Shown piece after piece: positions 2,585 through 13,780 of a stretch of 64,000 nucleotides of DNA. The stretch is from Adineta vaga (Eukaryota > Animalia > Rotifera): NCBI GenBank assembly GCA_021613535.1, contig CP075495.1:10168001-10232000 (forward strand). Direction: 5' to 3'. The position numbers and the translations under genes were made by a program. The notes below the pieces were generated by a model, which saw only the letters and a program-made list of their open reading frames with translations, was not told the DNA's origin and did not search any database. Numbering within the stretch: the stretch's first letter is position 1; each line of letters starts with the position of its first letter.

Positions 2585-4104
2585 ATGTCATCAATGAACT
2601 TATTATCAACATCGAACGAAATAAATTCATTCTCAGGAATTGACGTAATTGTGAAAGATGTTATTCCACATTCAAAAAGAGATGAAATCGATGAATACAA
2701 TTGTGTATATACTTGTACAGCTTGTCCAACTCTATTCGATTGGTGTGTAAAAGATGCATTTGGTATATCATGCAGTTTTACAACATGCTTGCTATTTCTT
2801 TACGGACAATTTGTAATGATCTTTGTTATTTTATTGCCAAATAGCTATTCATTCGTAAATTATATTCATTTTGTTCTACTTCATTGTCTTGAATTTCTTG
2901 CTTTATCAGCATATTATCGAACAATGTTTTCCAATCCAGTATGTATGTAATCGTCAAAGAATCATTCTATTAGTTTTATACTGAATATTCAGGGTGCTAT
3001 ACCATTGAATGGCGCTACACTAGAAAAATTATCAAGCTATGGTAATGGTGCAACCATTTATCGATGTACAGTGTGTCAAAGTATAAAACCACCACGAGCA
3101 CATCATTGTAGGTATTGTCATTTGTAATCTTTATCTCAATAAAAAGTATTGTCAAATATCATATTTGACTTCAAGTTAATGTATTCAGTTCATAATCAGG
3201 GACAATAGAATTTTTTCTAGAGCTGTTTTTTCTTTCTTATCTGCTTAGAATCTGTCAACGATGTATAAAACGAATGGATCATCATTGTATGTTTGTGAAT
3301 AACTGTGTTGGACAAAATAATCAGAAATATTTTATCCTTTTTACGGTAAGAAAATGTTTCTATTATAAAATTTAATACTTAGATTAAAATCATGACTTTA
3401 ATTTGAAAGAAAGAATTTCTAACAATTTAATTTCCGTCTGTGCCCCTAACCTTGTTTACAGAAGGAATATGTACTCAAGAAACTGTCTCAGTACTACGAT
3501 CGCTCATAGATCAACTCTACTATATCCACGAGACTAATTTGTATCCGATTGATTCAATATATACGAATCATTAAAACAACATGATAAGAAATATGCGTTT
3601 CTTTAATATTGTAGTTTTATACATCCGTCGTATCTCTATATACATTAATTGTTCTCTACAAACATTTAACTAATTGTATAACATCAAATTGGACTGGTAC
3701 GTTCCTGAATAAGAATTTATATGTATATCATTGTTTTCATTATTTTATAGTCTGTCCTGCTTGGTCACCACCGATGACATTTCTCTTTGTTATACTACTT
3801 GGTTTAGAATCATTCGGCTTTTTTGTATTCACTGCTGTTATGACGGGCATACAATTCTACTGTATATATACGGAGACAACGGTATTCTCTTCATAATCAT
3901 TGTAAAATTATATTGTTTAAATATTCATTTCAGGGCATTGAATTTTTCAAAGGTAAACGAAAAGTTTCTCATCGATCGAATTCATTTGTTTCATCATTGA
4001 AAATTGTCTTTGGTTCGCAAATTGGTCTTCAATGGTTAAATCCATTTTCTCGACCTGTTGATTATATAACTCAGAATGATGAACATATTACATTTGATAT
4101 TTAA
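2585..4104 (+). CDS. DHHC palmitoyltransferase, ZDHHC3/ZDHHC7-like (about 6 exons)
   Basis: [13 protein letters not shown]-terminal motif; MFSNP-GAIP; [44 protein letters not shown] Cys-rich domain; C-terminal GIEF...[12 protein letters not shown]. Confidence 0.9.
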
Positions 4105-4205
4105 AAGAGAATATTTATTTTCCGTCAAATAGCAAGTAATAAATAAAAAATATGAACACAAAGAATTATGTGAATTTATTCCTTTTTTTGTTTTCGAATC
4201 AATCT

Positions 4206-6767
4206 TTATTTCAGTTTGTTAATATCATTTGATATATTTGTTTGAAATTTTTTTAATGCATCAAATACAACACACATGTCACCTTTCAAATCTGAGATAA
4301 TTTGTGAAACATGTTGTGTACTGGAAATAGTCTCAATACTTTGATTATAAGGATTAAATCGAATAGCAAACGGACGTTTGATTGATAAAGCAAATTCTCT
4401 ACGAGAAAAAACAAATAATCTATTAGATAAGAGATAAATTTTTATCAGAATATTTACCTCATCTTTTCTTTAGCTTCAATAAAACTTTCTGATACGAAAT
4501 ATTGATCTTGATATGTTGTTATCAAACATGTTTGTTTACAAACTACATCCGGATCAAATGGAATTTTTTTTGCTTTATCACTCAATGCATGTTCCAATTC
4601 AGCACAGGATGATAATAACCCAGCACCATACGCTCGAAGACCATTATTTTGACGACATAAACCAAATTCAATTGTGAAAAAATAACACTAGAATAATTTG
4701 AGAATGTATGTAATAATCTTCTATGATCTTATCTCTTACTGTTGCTAAGCGATTGATATCCTCTTCGGATGCACCAATAGCAGCTAGACCAATTTCATGC
4801 GAAAATTGTGCAAAATTTGGATCGGCTAATAATGGAATATGACCCAATAATTCATGGCAACAATCCCTATAAAGAAAAAAAATAACATCAATTTGTTTTA
4901 CATTAATTTTAAAACAAAACTTACGGTTCAGGTGTATACGATGGATCCGACGAATGTCGTATATATTGTGTACAATGAAATACACGAAATGCTAAACCAT
5001 AGAGAAAATCTCGTGGTGATAAATAACCAGCAACAGGCCGTAAAGTAAAACCAGTTCGTTCACGAAGAAAACATGATATATCTTCTAATTGAGGTATATT
5101 ATCTTCTCTAGAAAAGAAGATGATAACATGCAAATAGAATATACTAATTTAAAAGAGTTTAGCCGTACCTGAAACCACATTTTTCTCTTAATAGGGGCCA
5201 ATTAGCCAAATATTCATTGCATGCATGTGTTGGATATAATTTATTTAATTTTCGAAATACGACACCCCATGTTTCAGTTTCTTCTTTGGTATATTCAACA
5301 CGTGGAATAGGTTCTCCACTAAACAAAAAACAAATGTGAAATTAATCAATTGTATTCTCAAAACTCAAAGAAAAGACAAGCAAATAACTTACTGTTTGTA
5401 TGCCATCGCTACATCATGAAAATACATTCGACGTGCTCTATAAACTCGATCAGTAAAGCCCTAATAAACAAATGAATTATAGATTGATTTTTACAACTAA
5501 AACAATTTCTCTACCGGATGATCAGCATCAAGATCTGCTCCATAAAGAAGAACTTTAATTGAACATTGGTCTAAATCAGTAATTCGCCGTGGAAACCAAA
5601 GTATTTCTTCTGTTGCAACTAAACAAAAAAGAATTATATTCTTTTCCAATGTAATTATTTCATACCTTTTCCTTTCTTATGTTTTTTCACTTGTGTTTGT
5701 ATTTTTTCGAAATTTTCTCTCGAAAAATCGTCATCAGTGAAACTTTTTCGTCGTGTAAAAGATTTCTTTTTTTCTTGAACAGAATCAAACATTGATTGAG
5801 AACGATTATATCCTGTAAATTTTGATTTCGGTTTTTGAACATCAACACCTGCCGGATAAATCCATAAATCATCATCTCGAATGACAACAATTGAACCTGT
5901 TTTTGAACTAATTGATTGTTCATCATCACTACTCATATTATCATCAAAAGAAATCGTCGAATATGTTTGTTCAGTCAACATTGGTGCAGTTGGCATTAGA
6001 AAATTTGAAACTGGATTACGAATAAAACCAGGAATCGTTCGATTGTATGTTGTGACAGACGTTTTTTCAAAATCAAGTGATGACCAAGATGATGAGGGAG
6101 AATCCATAATTGATGTTATACGTTGATTAGATGGATGTTGACAATATGTACGTAAACAACATTGATCAGTCAATGTTAACGAATCGTTTGTTGATGAGAT
6201 TTGTTTTAGATTATCAACTAATTGATTTAATGACGAAAGATTTTCCTTTAAATTAACTATTTGTTCTTGTAAATTTTTGATAGTTAATGATGATGGTGTA
6301 TCAATTTTTTCAAGATCTTGAATATTACGTATCATATTAATCCAATCATTACTAACGAATAATGGTAAATAAGAAAATAATTGTTTTGAATGAATCATTT
6401 GAATAATTGTTAATAAACATGACGAATCATGTAGATCATCTAAGCATTGTTTAAGAATTTCATAAATATGATGATCGAAATCAGAATTTAATATTGATAA
6501 AGAATAATGAAGAACATTTTGAAGATTATAATAGGCTTGTTCTAATTGTTTATATGTAAAATAACGTTTTAAATTATCTTCGATTTCATTGAATGAACCA
6601 TGATCAATAACATTTGATAAATAACATAGAACAGTATCATAACATAAAATAGATGATGATGAATCATTTGTTAATGAAATATATAAATGATGTTGTAATG
6701 CATTTTGTAATTGCGTTGAAGATAATAAGGAAATATCCAATGAAGATTTTTGAAACATGATTTGCAT
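4206..6767 (-). CDS. TPH: Tryptophan hydroxylase-like aromatic amino acid hydroxylase with an atypical ~367-aa N-terminal extension
   Basis: [50 protein letters not shown] (Fe ligands), [11 protein letters not shown] and YGAGLLSS. The GYLSP and YFFT variants are TPH-type rather than PAH/TH-type. The first exon (5666-6767) joins in phase 1 across a 47-nt intron (5619-5665). Confidence 0.9.
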
Positions 6768-7700
6768 ATATGAACTTCAAATGATGTGAAATGAAATTAG
6801 AAAGAGTAGTATTGATATTTTTGCACTAGTATTTATATGTACTCGTATGAATGAGACAAAAGATAGAATATGAATCACTCGGTTCTAAACTTTTAGAAAT
6901 GATCATTCCTGTAAGTTCTAAATCGAAATTCGGTAGAAAGAGAATAGCACTCGTATATACAATTGATCATCACTGTTCCATGCCGTGACGGCGTGATGAT
7001 TTTCTATGAGTAAAAAAGAAAATTAAAAATCAACTATGCGACAGCTGTTTCATTTTCAAACATGTAAGTACAAGTCGAGAATTAAACCTTTTTTGTCTGA
7101 TGTACTCAGTGTTTTTTTAATCATAATTTTCATCTCATTATGCTGCTTATTTTTGTTAGCCAGATTCGAATGGAATATTTAATGAAAATGTTTCTACTTG
7201 ACTAAAAAAGAGACTTTGTTCTTAAAGGATATATACTAATATAACCTGTGTACTTTCGCACAATAAATGAAGATTTTATGAATTGTATTGGAATAAAAGT
7301 AGATTATTCCAGCTGATACTTCTTTTTCTTTCTCTCTTTGAATGGAATACTTTATTGTCGATCTATTGTTAGTTTAATGTGAAATGGTAATGACATTGGC
7401 ATGTTTACTTTGGCGTTCGTTTCTTTCACAAAAAAATGTTTGGAACGAAATTCGAAAGATGAAACTTATCGTTTCGATGCTTTTATTGATTGTTAAATTA
7501 GAATGCGATCTTTAAAAACGAAATCAAATTTGAAATACTACTGTGTATCAATGGTCACCTTGTATGTTATAGAGATGAAATTTCTATGCGTTGTATTCTT
7601 TTTTAATTAGGAGATGAATCATTCAGAGTAATCGATTTAACAAATGAGTAGTAACGATAAATTTTTCATGTCATGAAATAGTATTGATCCATCCACAGAA

Positions 7701-10700
7701 ATGGATCAACTATATTTTCTTCTTAATGAAAATTCGTTTTCACCAAATTTAACTATCACTGAAGATAATAGATTCAAACGAATCAATGTTGTTATGGAAG
7801 CAATCGATAATGATCTTTTGAAAAAAGAAGAAGACGAACAACAACCGCAACAATCATCATTTCCATCATTTGATTTTAAACAAACTAACACAATTACTAC
7901 AACCAATACATCAGCATTAGTCGAAAATTTTACTGATACTTCATTAACAGAACAACATACTCGTCGAACGGTAACATTCGATGATGATCACAGTTTTGTT
8001 CCTTCGATCTTAAATTTACCTATACATACAACAAATATCACATCTCGATTGTCGAATCGTGATCCAATTTTAAATGAAGAGCAACAGGAAGACATGATTA
8101 ATCGTGTACGCTCATCGAATATTCCTAATGAATCTGATCAAATCAATGTTATCACGCAAGATTTGAGTAATCTTGTAAGTAATCAATACTATTATCAGTC
8201 TCTAATCCAAACAACATAGAGAATAACATTAGTTTTACATTTCTACCAAATGTTTTTCTTCAAAGGCTACTGAAGATGAATATATTCCAGGTGGCTTTGT
8301 AAATCTTGATCAAGATTTAGAAGAAGAATTATTAAATGATTTTGATGATGAATTCGATGATGGAAATATTAGACGTAGTCGATATATATCATCACTTCGT
8401 TCTAGTGATCCAGTTCTTACTATAATTCGATCGCCAATCGAACTGTGGCAACGTGCACGTATTCTCATTGCAATTCATCTCCATAAAGTATCCGTATTCA
8501 TTGATATTTATGCCATCCTTTTGTTTTTTGTTTCGGTTTATTCCATTGATATGTAGATACAAACTAGAATATCTAATGCATATGATAATACAATTCCTGT
8601 ATCGGCTATAATTGATACATCAATCAGGAAGATATCTGATGAAAATAAGCCATCGAATAGTATTAATGAAACGGATTATCTAGAAAAAATTTTTCAACAA
8701 AAAAATAATTCAGAAGATCGAAAGATTACTTTTGGTCTTATAGTTATTAAACAATTCTCCCTTGATTCATCTCAACAGTATCAATACGTAGACTTTTATG
8801 ATGTTGAACAAGGATATATTATCATTTCCAACGTACTTGATAATTTCAAAACAGAAGAAGTTTCACTACATAGTATATCAATTGTTGATAATAATCTAAT
8901 ATCTATGTTTATGAAATAACTTTTAGAAAAAGATGTTACATACAGATCATTGACACAAGATAATTGTAAATTACATGTATATGCTATTGATCGGAAATTA
9001 TTGAATGAAATACCATCAGTACAATTGGATTGTTCTTTTCAATTTGATTTTATGATTTGTATACCTATTTTTCGTCTTATACTCGGTTTTATGAATATGA
9101 AAAATCACAAATCATTGATGATTCTAATCGGTGATGTTTCTCGTAAATGTATATTTCTATCAAAACAAGAAATATCCGAACATATTCATAGTGTTCTATA
9201 TATTCACGAAATTTCATTACTTTTTATTGGTATGTAAAATGGCGTAAATGGCGTTTATTTTTTCTATAACCATCAAATTTTTTAGGTTGTATAGGCCGTA
9301 TATTGCAATATAATACTCAATCACTTCAATTTATTTCTCAACCGATATTTACATCTGAACTTCCACAATTACCATTTCATTCTCATGAATCAATTCTACA
9401 TATGTGCGATATACAATCACATCGATCTATTGGTCTTCTATCCAGTCGATATTTTCTCGTTTGGCAATATGCACCAAATGAAAAATTACTATTGAAATTC
9501 TGTAATTCATTTCAATATGATTTTAATCGTTGTCATCATCATTCGAAATTTGATTATTTAATATTTGCATTGATTGATGGAGTTATTTTAATTTATCAAT
9601 TTGAACAAATGAAACGAATTCGTCGTTATCAATGTCATTGGCAACTGATCACCGATTTAAGAACAACTCAAAATTTTCTTCTTTCTTCATCAATGGATCA
9701 TCGAATTAATGTTTGGAATTTAGGTTAGAATACAAAATTCAATCGTAACTTGATTGATTTTTATTCGAAAACTTTAGAAACTCTTCAACATATATATCAA
9801 TACAATACTTCAAAAGAAATCTTTCAAATTGATATCATTCATGAAAATTTATTTTATTATCGTACTTTACAAGAGATTATTCTCTTTCAATTAAATTTAC
9901 ATACAGTATTATTTTCAGTAATTAAAACTAAAGTTCGAACATTGAAATTATTTAACGATACACAAAAAATTGCACGAATTCTAGCACTCTTAGATGATTA
10001 TTCATGTGTACTTATACCAATTACTGGCTGTTGTCTTACACATGTACCAAATGTAGCAAAAAAACCAATCAAACAAGTTTTACATGATATTAGTAGGTAA
10101 GAATACAAAAACAAAATCTTAATGTTTGAAATATGATTAGATGAGAACTTCTTATCAAATTTATTCCATATAGATCAAGTATTTATTCACTTCATTTCGA
10201 TGGTGAAATAGTTCTTTATCGTACTCATAATGATCCATGTGTAGCAGAATATAAAATACAAAGTAAATCAGAACAATCTACAATAACTTGTATGACATTA
10301 ATTAATCCCATGCGGACACATTTATTCAGTTTGGGTGCAATGGAAATATCTACAGAAAAATCACTTGCAAACCAAGCGATCTTTTTCGGACATTCTAATG
10401 GTTATATATCACTTTTTCAAGGTGATTCTTTAACTATGGAACCTATATTAGCACATAAAACTTCACTCGTATGTCTTGAAACATCACGAGCTAGTATGCA
10501 AATGTCAAATATTTCATTTACCAATAGTGAAATTCTCCTATCATGTAGTATAGATCGAAGTATTTATTTATGGGATTTAAATATAAATAAATCTAATGAA
10601 TCAATTCAATTAATTCATATCATAACAATTGAACAAGAAAAAAATATTTCATTAGAATCTATCAAATTTCTAACAATGATTGATAATTTTCTTGTTGCGA

Positions 10701-11521
10701 ATTATTCCGATCAAAAATTTCTTCATATTTGGCAATTATTAAATATATCTATTCAAACAAACGATCGAGATCGTTGGGGTATTGTTGAACATCCAACAAA
10801 AGGTAATCATCATCATAGTCAAATACAAGGTAAAATTAAAAAGTGATTCCACTAATTTTCTTATTCGAATATTCCTATTTTCTAAAGCAATATCTGCAAT
10901 ATCAAAATTAAAATTATTTGCTTCATCAGATAGTGAAGGTAATATTAAAATATGGGATAATACAAATAGTTTATTGCGCGAAATACATCTTGATTCAACA
11001 CTTCATACTATCGAATTCAATTCACAAAACGGAGAATTAATAATTGCTTATCAAGATAATCTGCATTTGATTTTATTGGAGAATTATTTAATCAACACTA
11101 AGAAATTCAAAGTTAAACAACAGATGATTGTTGATTGTATTGCAGAAGATAATCGTTTAGAAGTTACTCCATCATTAATAATACCCTATGAATCATTACC
11201 ATTTTTTGATTATAAAATTAAACATCATCATACAAAGAAGCGATTACAAAGATTTGAACGACAATTAGCAGGTTAAGAAAATATCCATTGTTTTTTTAAA
11301 AATTTCATCATCAATGATTTTACTAAGATTTCTTTTTTTTTCTAGGTCGTTTTGTTGTAATCGACAGTCAAAGTTCTCAATCCGATGATGAAAATACTTC
11401 ATCATTAACTACTGATCGTTTATCAACTATAAGCGATGATGATAATTGGTCAAACTTAGCTGATGACGTTAAAGATATATTGCGAATGAAAAAATATGAA
11501 ATTCGAAAAGAAAATAAATAG
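7701..11521 (+). CDS. Multi-exon WD40-repeat protein (WDR87/WDR97-like; family assignment tentative)
   Basis: WD repeats: LLSSSMDHRINVWNL, LLSCSIDRSIYLWDL, LFASSDSEGNIKIWD..LLREI; about 9 exons with short GT-AG introns; stop TAG at 11519-11521. Confidence 0.75.
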
Positions 11522-11570
11522 CTTAAACAACAGTTTATGTATATATATATATATATATTTATCTTTAATA

Positions 11571-13780
11571 TTAAAATGGTCGATAAGAATGAAATCCATT
11601 ATGAATATGATAATTTTCTGGTATAGAATTTGTTGCTTGTCTTGTATGTTGTGTTCGATAGAGATAATCCATTTTAGCTACTTGTCCATTTTTATTTGTC
11701 CATTCGATAAGAAAAATAATTTGTCGATGACGTGGAGGAATACAATCAAATGTTGATAAGGCTTTTCGTGAATTACGAATACGTACACTATCATTTAAAT
11801 CAATTTCGATATTTAAAAAGTCTATTAAAGATAAGTTTTCAGCAATAAATATAGTAAAATTATGTTCATTTGTTGTGACATAATAATTATAATCAAGTCC
11901 CTAGAAAAATAAAACCAAAGTATGAAAGGAACAAACGATTTTTACAAACTTTTTGTGGTGGATTATGATTTTTTAGAACAGTTGCAATTAAACAATCAGC
12001 TAATAAGGTTGCAGGTTCATGAGTAACTTGAACATTCAATTGAACTTTTGAATGAATGACTAGTGTATAATCTTTCGTAGATTCATTATCTTCATTCCAA
12101 AAACTAGCTGAAAAAGGTATTAGAACATAATAACCAGGTTCTAATGATCCAATCCAGTGTGTAAATGCTCCACGATTTGTACATAATATTGCTTGATATG
12201 TTCCAACTTCCTTCGAAGCTCCTTGCTCAACATTACATAGAACAAATGATTGTGTATGGTAATTTCTTATTCGACGATTTGGACGATGGTACAACAAACT
12301 GATATTGACTAATGATGTTCTACAAATGAGGATATACATATATATATATATATATAATGACGTGAGATTTTTCTTTTGTAGAGAATTATATTTACTTGGA
12401 TAGATGAAAATGAAATGTAGGAAGTGATTGTGTTGCTGATTGAGTAAAATGATTAACTTCGCGAACATCATAATCATCACTAGCATATGATGATATTGTA
12501 ATTGAATTAAAAAATCGAAGAAATTTTGGCCAAGATATCCAAAATACACCGGGAGATCGACTATTTCGTCCGATAGAATTTAATTTATTCAATATGGGTA
12601 CAGTAAGAAATTCATCTTGATAGTAAGAAGAGGCATGTGGATCACGGACTAGGACAAACGGCAATAATATTGATGCATTCGAATATGCAGCAAGTACAGA
12701 AAAAGCATGATTACTGGGAATATGATTTCGTGCATATTCTTCCTCACTGATATCTAATCGACCAGTCGATGCACCAATTAATAAACTAGAAAAGAAAGAT
12801 AACAAACTATTTTTGACTATGATCAAATGAATTAAATCATACTGTGATTCACAAGCAGATAAAAGTTTTGCCCATATGATTTCATCATCAATAGTATTCT
12901 TAGTTGGATTTAATTCAATATGTTCACATGGAGCACCAGTTAACAATTGTAACCCTTCTTCAGTTTGTCCACCAATTAAATCTGCATATGAACCGAATAG
13001 TTTCGCACAAGCTTTTTCAATTAATGGAACATATAATTGTCGATGATGTGCTTGGGTAAATGCAAGTTGATTATATTGTGTACAAGGAAAACAATCATCA
13101 ACAATAACTGTTTTCCATAAACCATTATGACAAAGACGAATGAGATAAACACCTTGTTCATTAATCGTTTTAGTTAATAGGATATGTTCAAGCATATGTG
13201 GTCGTTCAGTAATCAAAGCTAGAGCAGCCATTAACCAACAATCACCAAGAGCACCTTGTTGAATATCACTTGGCTTTGGTACGAATAGACAGACCAATGT
13301 CGATGAGGATCAGAATGTAATAATGGAGTTATATGAGCAATTCTTAACCACTTCAATGGATGATTACTAACAGACTCAATTTCACCGATTGAACGGAAAA
13401 TTGGAGGAAATTGATCATCAACAAAATGTGTACCTTCCTACGAGAAATTTCATTCATAGACATAAAAAGGAAAGAGAAATTCAATACCATTCTACAAAAA
13501 TTCACTATATCACGATAAAGTTTTTCCGCTTTTGCTTCATCTGTTTGTCGACGATCACGAATAGGTAATGATTCATATGTTGTATTAGATAATTTTGTAT
13601 TAATCAATTTTTTCTAAAAGAAAACTTATATTTATGAGCGAAAAAACAAAGACTTATTTTTTGCATACTGAACTTACTTGTGACTGATGATTCGATGAGA
13701 TATTCTCTAATCGACGTGACCGATATGTTGATATCTGATTTGACTGTAAATTTTGTCCTTGCTCCTTTCGATGCTTCCAT
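11571..13780 (-). CDS. Calpain-15/SOL (calpain-D)-like cysteine protease; contains an apparent frameshift and the start is uncertain
   Basis: FVDDQFPP..KWLR, PSDIQQGALGDCWLMAAL, GLWKTVIVDDCFP, LIEKACAKLFGSY, HAFSVL, GVFWISW, and SOL-type C-terminus DCIPPRHRQII; no EF-hands or N-terminal Zn fingers seen. Confidence 0.85.

Follow-up and report, generated by a model that had tools for sequence, protein, structure and literature searches.

A tryptophan hydroxylase (TPH) gene of the bdelloid rotifer Adineta vaga begins with a 367-codon exon that is spliced in frame to the catalytic core. The gene lies on the minus strand of a 64,000-nucleotide stretch of contig CP075495.1 (positions 10,168,001 to 10,232,000; this whole stretch is called the window). 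The predicted protein belongs to the catalytic family by its core, yet its architecture is non-canonical: it lacks the ACT domain and carries an N-terminal module of different kind. The joint between module and core is found in assembled contigs of three runs taken as RNA. We read the gene as a module-first, ACT-less TPH gene with the history, origin and function proposed below. Taken as a whole this reading is probable, and its single parts carry grades of their own.

To our knowledge, all characterised animal aromatic amino acid hydroxylases pair their core with an ACT domain, which serves in amino-acid sensing, stability and control of activation. A full-text search of the literature revealed no description of the TPH architecture reported here, and a survey of monoamine systems in bilaterians mentions A. 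vaga only for COMT (PMC10244343). The NCBI entry of the window protein is labelled 'hypothetical', and its relatives are labelled only as biopterin-dependent hydroxylases.

Gene structure, transcription and catalytic core

The gene starts with the ATG at 6767, comprises eight exons and ends with the TAA at 4208-4206 (Table 1). The conceptual translation of the eight exons is identical to P0070, the NCBI hypothetical protein I4U23_008935 of Adineta vaga (718 aa). The exons were searched one by one by reference, and P0070 served as the reference for the full-length work. Seven GT..AG introns of 47-74 nt each were traced between exons 1 and 8. A preliminary description of this DNA had noted an open reading frame (ORF) of 370 codons ending in KKHKKGK and a G before the donor gtatg, followed by a 47-nt intron and an in-frame second exon. 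All of these elements are found on the minus strand, and the observation is confirmed. The ORF extends from 6767 to 5655 if the read-through into the intron is included. Its 367 codons up to ...KKHKKGK are followed by the G at 5666 and the GT of the donor at 5665-5664, and without splicing it would stop 8 nt past the donor with the end ...KGKGMK. Intron 1 (5665-5619) reads GTATG...TTTAG, and exon 2 opens in frame at 5618 with TT GCA ACA GAA GAA ATA CTT TGG TTT CCA. Upstream of the start codon an in-frame TGA is located at 6779-6777, four codons 5' of the ATG.

Contigs of four public runs (X1 and X4 from study P1, X11 from study P5, and X9) were placed on window positions 4000-9500. The assembled contigs of X1, X4 and X11, which represent three runs and two studies, omit exactly the bases 5619-5665 as well as the other six introns, and all seven are GT..AG on the strand of the gene. 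A single X1 contig spans 4983 to 6472 without a break and includes four joints, and towards the 3' end the RNA contigs reach to 4128-4000. No RNA contigs from X1, X4 or X11 were found over 6760-9500. The X9 contigs cover 4000-9500 completely with zero joints and thus look like DNA. An intronless DNA copy of the gene was not found in the genome. All four loci with Biopterin_H bear introns, and two of them contain the module, so that the RNA joints are not explicable by a processed DNA copy. Transcripts across the 5666/5618 junction, which the preliminary description had named as a check, are therefore seen in the assembled RNA. One loose contig end at 6644 in X9 and X11 was considered as an alternative splice and rejected. 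It continues at the unrelated position C5:7127123 (L030, G000:C5:7125623-7128652) and occurs also in the DNA run, which indicates a chimeric contig.

Exons 2 to 8 tile the Pfam profile Biopterin_H from position 2 to 330 of 331. The assignment to TPH is based on searches against the PDB. Residues 365-718 of P0070 align without gaps to human TPH2 and to residues 103-439 of TPH1 with 563-579 bits. For the paralogue-type core of A. steineri, P0048, which reaches 550 bits with Biopterin_H, the scores are 569 bits to TPH2, about 469 to phenylalanine hydroxylase (PAH) and about 433 to tyrosine hydroxylase (TH). Exon 7 of the window gene alone gives 108-112 bits to TPH1/2 versus 73-90 to PAH and 76-79 to TH. 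Position 313 of TPH1 is a specificity position, which is Phe in TPH and Trp in PAH and TH. F581 of P0070 aligns to this Phe, and the TH-like paralogue on C6 has LYWFTVEFG there, with the Trp. The residues H540, H545 and E585 align to the iron ligands H272, H277 and E317 of TPH1 (PDB 5l01). The junction between exons 1 and 2 lies three to four residues before the equivalent of TPH1 residue 103, which is the boundary of the regulatory and the catalytic domain. At the other end TPH1 residue 439 is the last one aligned, and a long terminal helix (residues 683-717) is predicted by AlphaFold with low confidence. The C-terminal helix is the tetramerisation region in TPH1/2. The core is complete, of the TPH type and presumably active.

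The genome encodes two further aromatic amino acid hydroxylases, each found once in the six-contig assembly. These are a PAH-like locus (L014, G000:C3:11716500-11722500; FANRVLSYGSELD) and a TH-like locus (L015, G000:C6:2381500-2388000; KCHHLL..., LYWFTVEFG), which has an ordinary ACT-like ORF upstream.

The N-terminal module and its origin

Exon 1 matched no family in Pfam. An AlphaFold2 model of the module (m650f3b2730e6), built with 35 homologues, predicts a compact helical domain with three short strands (predicted local distance difference test, pLDDT, 84-97 over residues 21-140) and a long helix from residue 163 to 192, and is of low confidence elsewhere. Four heptads can be read from the sequence of the long helix, with I163, L166, I170, L173, L177, L180, V184 and L187 at the a/d positions in strict 3-4 spacing; L173 and L180 are nearly invariant among the homologues. 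The predicted disordered tail of about 175 residues is acidic and contains 15% Ser, yet it includes short islands that are invariant (columns across 35 and 42 sequences). The helical domain, the coiled coil and the Ser-rich linker with the kinase-type motifs RSQS and RRKS, as suggested in the preliminary description, are all present according to the model, the heptad spacing and the motifs. RSQS is conserved in the A-type modules only, i.e. in the window gene and its orthologues. Foldseek revealed no match of the module fold in the PDB at E<=0.001. In a wide VIA-align search the best Z of the module was 4.8, reached with helical proteins that are unrelated. In the ESM Atlas the shape search stayed at TM<=0.38, and the feature search yielded no usable match.

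A divergent ACT domain in exon 1 is ruled out by Pfam, hhalign and the predicted fold. The module shows no match to the Pfam ACT families PF01842 and PF21417 even at E<=10, while the positive control, the bdelloid ACT exons of P0072:1-185, hits PF01842 at 1.5e-9. An hhalign comparison of the module alignment (A1) with an alignment of bdelloid ACT domains (A5) resulted in a probability of 0.5%. The confident part of the predicted fold is a helical bundle and not the ferredoxin-like beta-alpha-beta-beta-alpha-beta fold. Profile searches had been named in the preliminary description as the way in which a hidden ACT domain might come to light, and they came out negative.

The module is nevertheless not an orphan. 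A profile search beyond the module family revealed P0054 (221 aa, E = 1.8e-6), P0055 (540 aa, E = 3.8e-4) and P0056 (224 aa, E = 5e-4). These E-values are corrected for the whole library, and the matches span profile positions 30-236, which comprise the folded domain and the zipper. The match to P0054 covers 150 residues including the domain outside the coiled coil, and all three proteins score z = 5.5-8.2 against shuffled sequences with the hidden Markov model (HMM) of the module. P0054 in turn matches the hypothetical proteins P0058 and P0059 of the moth Tuta absoluta at E = 5e-8 to 7e-8 over the same region. P0059 is directly followed by a 951-aa ORF with Exo_endo_phos and RVT_1 domains and is therefore assigned as the ORF1 protein of a long interspersed nuclear element (LINE). 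In hhalign the module family (A1) and the ORF1-like group (A2) are aligned with 96% probability (E = 2.9e-9) over 133 columns, with domain and zipper in the same register. LCYLSN corresponds to LLCFVxN and YF(S/T)xEQ to F(Y/F)TDDE, and LPxFV is followed by the coiled coil in both. An RRM-like C-terminal part was not found after the zipper, where the disordered tail and then the TPH core follow, and the locus contains no reverse-transcriptase ORF. From these similarities we lean slightly towards the view that a LINE ORF1 protein supplied, with its N-terminal part, the folded domain and the zipper of the module. The term 'unrelated' of the preliminary description thus holds for the relation to ACT, but not in general, since remote similarity links the folded part to a family with a LINE ORF1 protein among its members. 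P0055 combines a module-like N-domain and coiled coil at its N-terminus with C2H2 zinc fingers at its C-terminus and is a putative transcription factor.

It is quite possible, if not our preferred explanation, that the module is instead a bdelloid invention without any relation to transposons, and that the matches reflect a shared helical and coiled-coil composition. Applied to the Tuta ORF1 proteins themselves, the module HMM does not score above shuffles (z <= 1.5), so that the link is transitive. Against three ORF1-like sequences which had not been picked by the module profile, hhalign reaches only 41% probability (E = 2.8e-4). The ORF1-like family (A2) was not found in the A. vaga genome, and the lack of a fold match in PDB and Atlas fits an invention as well. 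A common composition does not easily account for the library-corrected match to P0054, which includes the domain outside the coiled coil, for the z-scores of the three proteins, for the motif-by-motif register with the ORF1-like group, or for the match of P0054 to ORF1 proteins across the same region. We continue with the origin from a LINE ORF1 protein as the slightly favoured reading.

Table 1. Features of the TPH gene in the window (positions of the window; residues of the predicted protein).
Feature	Position	Strand	Remarks
Presumed promoter and 5' leader of the module-first transcript	6768..6840	-	TATAAAT at 6837-6831; promoter inferred
Exon 1	5666..6767	-	367 codons and first base of codon 368; bdelloid-specific N-terminal module; joint 5666/5618 in three RNA runs
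Folded alpha/beta-helical N-domain (predicted)	6300..6725	-	residues ~15-156
LCYDxVLCYLSN	6612-6647	-	invariant; in N-domain
LPxFV(S/T)NDW	6342-6368	-	invariant; in N-domain
Zipper-like long helix (predicted)	6192..6281	-	residues 163-192; AlphaFold2 and sequence
Predicted disordered Ser/Thr/Asp-rich tail	5667..6191	-	residues 193-367; mostly pLDDT <50
Tail island of 11 residues	6135-6167	-	invariant
Tail island SPSSSWSSL	6072-6101	-	invariant
Tail island GFIRNPVxNF	6000-6029	-	invariant
Tail island SSDDEQ	5916-5933	-	invariant
Tail island VVxRxDxLWIYP	5853-5888	-	invariant
RSQS	5793-5804	-	A-type only
R339-x-x-S342	5742-5753	-	invariant in 42 sequences; 26 residues before the core
Basic KKHKKGK	5667-5687	-	end of the tail
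Intron 1	5619..5665	-	47 nt, phase 1; skipped in X1, X4, X11
Exon 2	5515..5618	-	Biopterin_H positions 2-29; start of the TPH catalytic core; maps from human TPH1 residue 103 (PDB 5l01)
Exon 3	5393..5460	-	Biopterin_H positions 30-51; RNA joints 5459/5514 and 5318/5393
Exon 4	5169..5318	-	Biopterin_H positions 53-101; RNA joints
Exon 5	4925..5107	-	Biopterin_H positions 103-162; RNA joints
Exon 6	4740..4866	-	Biopterin_H positions 164-205; iron-ligand histidines in HELLGH (H540, H545)
Exon 7	4458..4687	-	CYFFTIEFG with Phe581 (specificity) and Glu585 (third iron ligand)
Exon 8	4206..4398	-	Biopterin_H positions 283-330; C-terminal helix (predicted); stop TAA 4208-4206

Conservation, probable alternative first exons and loss of the ACT exons

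A word search revealed 47 homologues of the module, and a profile search of 1.84 billion proteins gave 19 representatives. The named carriers are Adineta vaga, A. ricciae, A. steineri and four Rotaria species, with full-length models of module and Biopterin_H of 712-736 aa. Wherever the context can be read, a TPH core exon follows 3' of the module. In the A. vaga genome the module is present only at C2 (the window) and C5, both of them TPH loci. Within the sequences searched, the module is confined to the TPH loci of bdelloids, in agreement with the lineage-specific N-terminus that had been assumed in the preliminary description. The most divergent modules, with 27-33% identity to the two modules of A. 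vaga, are found on the short contigs L018 (Logan SRR27500695) and L023 (ENA ERZ12289985), where the module is in both cases preceded by ACT exon 2 and followed by a core exon. These contigs may originate from deep-branching bdelloids or from other rotifers and would then date the module. Prokaryote-style gene callers list a stand-alone module protein of 370-390 aa in many metagenomes.

Across 42 module sequences 24 columns are invariant. In a tree of 41 modules the window gene and its Adineta and Rotaria orthologues form an A-type clade with 100/100 support and a stem of 0.7, apart from the B-type sequences, which include the C5 copy. Both types are present in Adineta and in Rotaria. The DNA run differs from the window at three positions in exon 1, all of them synonymous, and six of the seven coding differences across DNA and RNA-like runs are synonymous. 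These differences indicate purifying selection on the window gene.

The paralogous TPH gene is located at C5:9040732-9044900 (L013). It shares with the window gene the layout of module and core exons, the phase-1 junction (..K-G-V-E...) and the flanking genes, which are collinear at C2 and C5 (a DHHC gene at one end and a calpain gene at the opposite end). The modules of the two copies are 43% identical, the core exons 5 and 7 89-95% and exon 2 82%. Since both types occur in Adineta and Rotaria and the flanks are collinear, the two genes are old duplicates, and the pair is consistent with the bdelloid genome duplication. In contrast to the window copy, which has none, the C5 copy contains two intact ACT exons about 0.5-1 kb 5' of the module exon, with a phase-1 donor that fits the core acceptor. 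The two corresponding ORFs encode a typical TPH ACT domain (...TSFIFSIKNRIGGLARALQVFQ / ENGINVVHIESRRSRRADSEYEIYVDLEAD...).

The arrangement of C5 is not exceptional. The order ACT exon 1, ACT exon 2, module exon, core exons is found in the B-type loci L013, L017, L019 and L022 as well as in the A-type locus L020/L021, in each case with the ACT exons 0.5-1 kb upstream of the module exon. ACT exon 2 also lies upstream of the module in the partial and more divergent contigs L018 and L023. Splice phases were analysed in seven loci. The donor GTAAGT of ACT exon 2, which follows AAA right after ...KNGQPIxRK, is in phase 1 in six of the seven. The module donor shows phase 1 in six as well, the partial contig L018 being the one in which it was not located, and every one of the seven core acceptors requires phase 1. 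In six of the seven loci the module ATG is preceded by an in-frame stop at a distance of 7-14 codons, and none of the seven shows a conserved acceptor able to join ACT to the module. The transcript contig L027 of a related A-type species, intronless and 3,062 nt long, contains a whole ORF of 727 aa. Its 5' leader includes an in-frame stop and is collinear with the genomic stretch that follows the ACT exons and immediately precedes the module ATG. For A. steineri the NCBI annotation gives a separate ACT gene of 178 aa (L019 6781-7436) upstream of a module-plus-core gene of 724 aa. Phases, stops and transcript support two putative, mutually exclusive 5' ends, by which either the ACT exons or the module exon would be joined to the core. 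If the module exon is an alternative first exon of this kind, A. vaga would still possess an ACT-regulated TPH, namely the C5 copy.

In the 64-kb window no ACT exons were found by tblastn with C5-type and A-type ACT exons or by HMMs from seven loci on six-frame translations. The direct connection of the core without an ACT domain, as first described, is thus borne out for exon 1 and for the window. The 1.85-kb interval that holds the ACT exons at C5 corresponds to 4.8 kb in the window, where a WD40 gene lies on the opposite strand, and synteny is kept on both sides. ACT exons are missing from the A-type loci of A. vaga, A. ricciae, A. steineri and L016 and are present in L020/L021 and in the Rotaria A-type models. 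As L016 groups with L020 in the tree, the loss of ACT probably happened more than once. The distribution makes it well supported that the A-type gene of Adineta became dedicated to the predicted module isoform after the loss of its ACT exons. The claim that the ACT domain had been 'replaced' stands insofar as the window copy has none, but an alternative first exon that was left as the sole one after the loss of the ACT exons describes the case better.

The only marginal candidate for an ACT exon 2 in the window lies at 7430-7510 on the minus strand, about 700 nt upstream of the module ATG, where ACT exon 2 is placed in other loci. It reaches E = 1.7 and an HMM score of -1.0, with 11 of 27 residues identical and two in-frame stops, and may be a decayed relic or a product of chance. 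Between a calpain-like gene (about 11570-13270) and the TPH gene lies a multi-exon gene with WD40 repeats, 8950-11276 on the plus strand. The same WD40 arrangement is seen at the A-type loci L016, L020, L028 and L029 and not at the B-type locus L013, where the ACT exons are about 0.8 kb from the calpain-side block. The interval that takes the place of the ACT exons also contains an ATG-initiated ORF of 172 aa (MDQLYFLLNENSF...) at 7701-8219 on the plus strand, for which X1 and X4 have no RNA contigs and X11 has a trace only.

It could be argued that the module exon is a neutral by-product, i.e. junk exonised from a cryptic internal promoter, that the isoform is inactive or irrelevant, and that serotonin is made by the ACT isoform of C5. 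More than half of the module is predicted to be disordered, the long A-type stem indicates fast change after the duplication, and any function of the isoform is so far a prediction. Junk would however hardly be conserved, as the module is, throughout Adineta and Rotaria in either paralogue and on bdelloid-like contigs that are more distant, with many of the 24 invariant columns in the 'disordered' part. The exon 1 variants are without exception synonymous, and the core downstream is intact and in exons 5 and 7 89-95% identical to that of the paralogue. Moreover the Adineta copy lost the ACT exons and kept the module, which is the opposite of what this explanation predicts. We consider it improbable.

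Even less credit is due to a three-part product of ACT, module and core, in which the module would be an insertion and the ACT exons would lie farther upstream or would have diverged too far to be detected. Three NCBI models from Rotaria (P0065, P0072 and P0074; 844-903 aa, 'Tryptophan 5-hydroxylase 2') do fuse ACT, module and core, and the ACT-like stretch at 7430-7510 is on the right strand. The Rotaria fusions, however, use three non-homologous join points, one of which deletes the invariant LCYDxVLCYLSN. We regard them as probable artefacts of the predictor, although some species may possess a three-part isoform. In the window the searches with tblastn and the family HMM gave no ACT match, and the relic candidate has two stops. 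The in-frame TGA four codons before the ATG, the lack of RNA contigs over 6760-9500, where the WD40 gene sits on the opposite strand, and the absence of ACT from the A-type loci of A. ricciae and A. steineri argue in the same direction. We judge such a product very improbable. The annotation of bdelloid TPH genes is inconsistent, and the loci are split or mis-joined by gene predictors.

Two separate genes, a 370-codon ORF with its own protein ending in ...KGKGMK and, downstream of it, a TPH core as a gene that is 5'-truncated or initiated in some other way, would fit the stop 8 nt past the donor and the stand-alone protein of the metagenome calls, but this can be dismissed almost with certainty, because RNA contigs in three runs skip 5619-5665 and stay in frame, exon 2 has no ATG and begins at a splice acceptor, other species provide full-length models and an intronless transcript contig, the phases of module donor and core acceptor agree, and the module occurs only beside TPH cores. 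The independent gene which the preliminary description had named as a possible refutation is contradicted by transcripts that join the 367-codon exon directly to the TPH core.

Returning to the module-first, ACT-less gene, several points weigh against it as set out here, in addition to the three results on the ORF1 link and the Rotaria fusion models given above. The run type 'RNA' of X1, X4 and X11 was a guess of the program, backed by the behaviour of the contigs alone. Of exon 1, the RNA contigs include the part between 5666 and about 6472, which leaves the first ~98 codons and the transcription start outside; this part would follow from conservation, from the upstream stop and from the full-length transcript contig L027 of the related species. 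The splicing of ACT to the core at C5 is deduced from the conserved phases and the conserved ACT exons. A structure prediction of the full-length protein had been proposed in the preliminary description. The full-length AlphaFold2 model of P0070 (42-row alignment) is uninformative, also as to a docking of the module on the core, with a mean pLDDT of 45 and poor quality even for the core, whereas the module alone yielded a confident helical domain.

Proposed history and comparison with known enzymes

The following history is supported as far as the layout is concerned, i.e. for the alternative first exon and the later loss of ACT in the A-type copy. In the ancestral bdelloid TPH gene two ACT exons would have been followed by the module exon and then by the core exons, and the module exon, which carried a separate start codon, would have served as an alternative first exon. 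Its donor and that of ACT exon 2, both in phase 1, would have fitted the same core acceptor. After the genome duplication both copies would have retained this layout, until the A-type copy of Adineta lost its ACT exons while the C5 copy kept both alternatives. A more tentative part of the proposal is how the module arrived. The N-terminal part of a LINE ORF1, perhaps with an internal promoter, may have entered an intron of the ancestral TPH gene, in sense orientation, and been retained as an alternative N-terminus since before the split of Adineta and Rotaria. The ACT-less window copy would then be a dedicated enzyme of serotonin synthesis, run by a transposon-derived oligomerisation module and its phosphosites and no longer by the sensing of amino acids.

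The functional side of the proposal is, if anything, slightly more doubtful. The enzyme would still make 5-hydroxytryptophan. A constitutive self-association by the zipper would replace the amino-acid-dependent N-terminal dimerisation by ACT; in TPH2 the instability of the enzyme resides in the regulatory domain, which forms dimers with L-Phe (PMC5055035). Control would be exerted by phosphorylation, perhaps with binding of 14-3-3, at the RxxS and RSxS sites and at the conserved linear motifs. The outcome could be an isoform for serotonin synthesis whose regulation or localisation differs from that of the ACT isoform.

A whole class of animals would, on this reading, keep a second, RNA-supported TPH isoform in which ACT is swapped for an unrelated module, with one duplicate dedicated to the module. 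This amounts to a natural experiment on the need for the ACT domain. The gene pair may also provide a clean case of alternative first exons that were subfunctionalised after genome duplication, and possibly one in which an ORF1 fragment from a retrotransposon came to serve as the regulatory domain of an enzyme of both metabolism and neurotransmitter synthesis. The annotations of bdelloid TPH, with a separate 'ACT gene' and inconsistent three-part models, need curation.

A domesticated ORF1 gene is known from mammals, L1TD1. The module resembles the N-domain and coiled coil of LINE ORF1 proteins in its helical N-domain, which ends with LPxFV and is followed by a heptad coiled coil. It differs from them in that it comprises the N-terminal part only, without an RRM-like region, and is fused to an enzyme, and the link between the two is transitive.

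Phosphorylation sites in the N-terminal region are known for TH (Ser40, RRQS) and TPH1 (Ser58, RRNS). Like these enzymes, the window protein has an invariant R-x-x-S (R339, S342) shortly before the core; unlike theirs, this predicted site is part of a non-homologous disordered tail. The bdelloid ACT exon itself retains a site of the Ser58 type (ESRRSRRxxSEYE).

With the animal enzymes TPH1 and TPH2 the window enzyme shares the whole catalytic domain and, by prediction, the C-terminal helix, the 2-His-1-Glu triad in the alignment, the Phe at the F313 position and the best PDB matches. In contrast to them it has no ACT domain and carries instead the 367-residue module of helical domain, zipper and disordered tail. 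Bacterial phenylalanine hydroxylases are ACT-less, core-only and monomeric enzymes. A core without ACT is thus common to them and to the window enzyme, and bacterial PAH structures are among the weaker PDB matches of the paralogue core. Unlike the bacterial enzymes, however, the window enzyme would retain the animal C-terminal helix and carries a large new N-terminal module.

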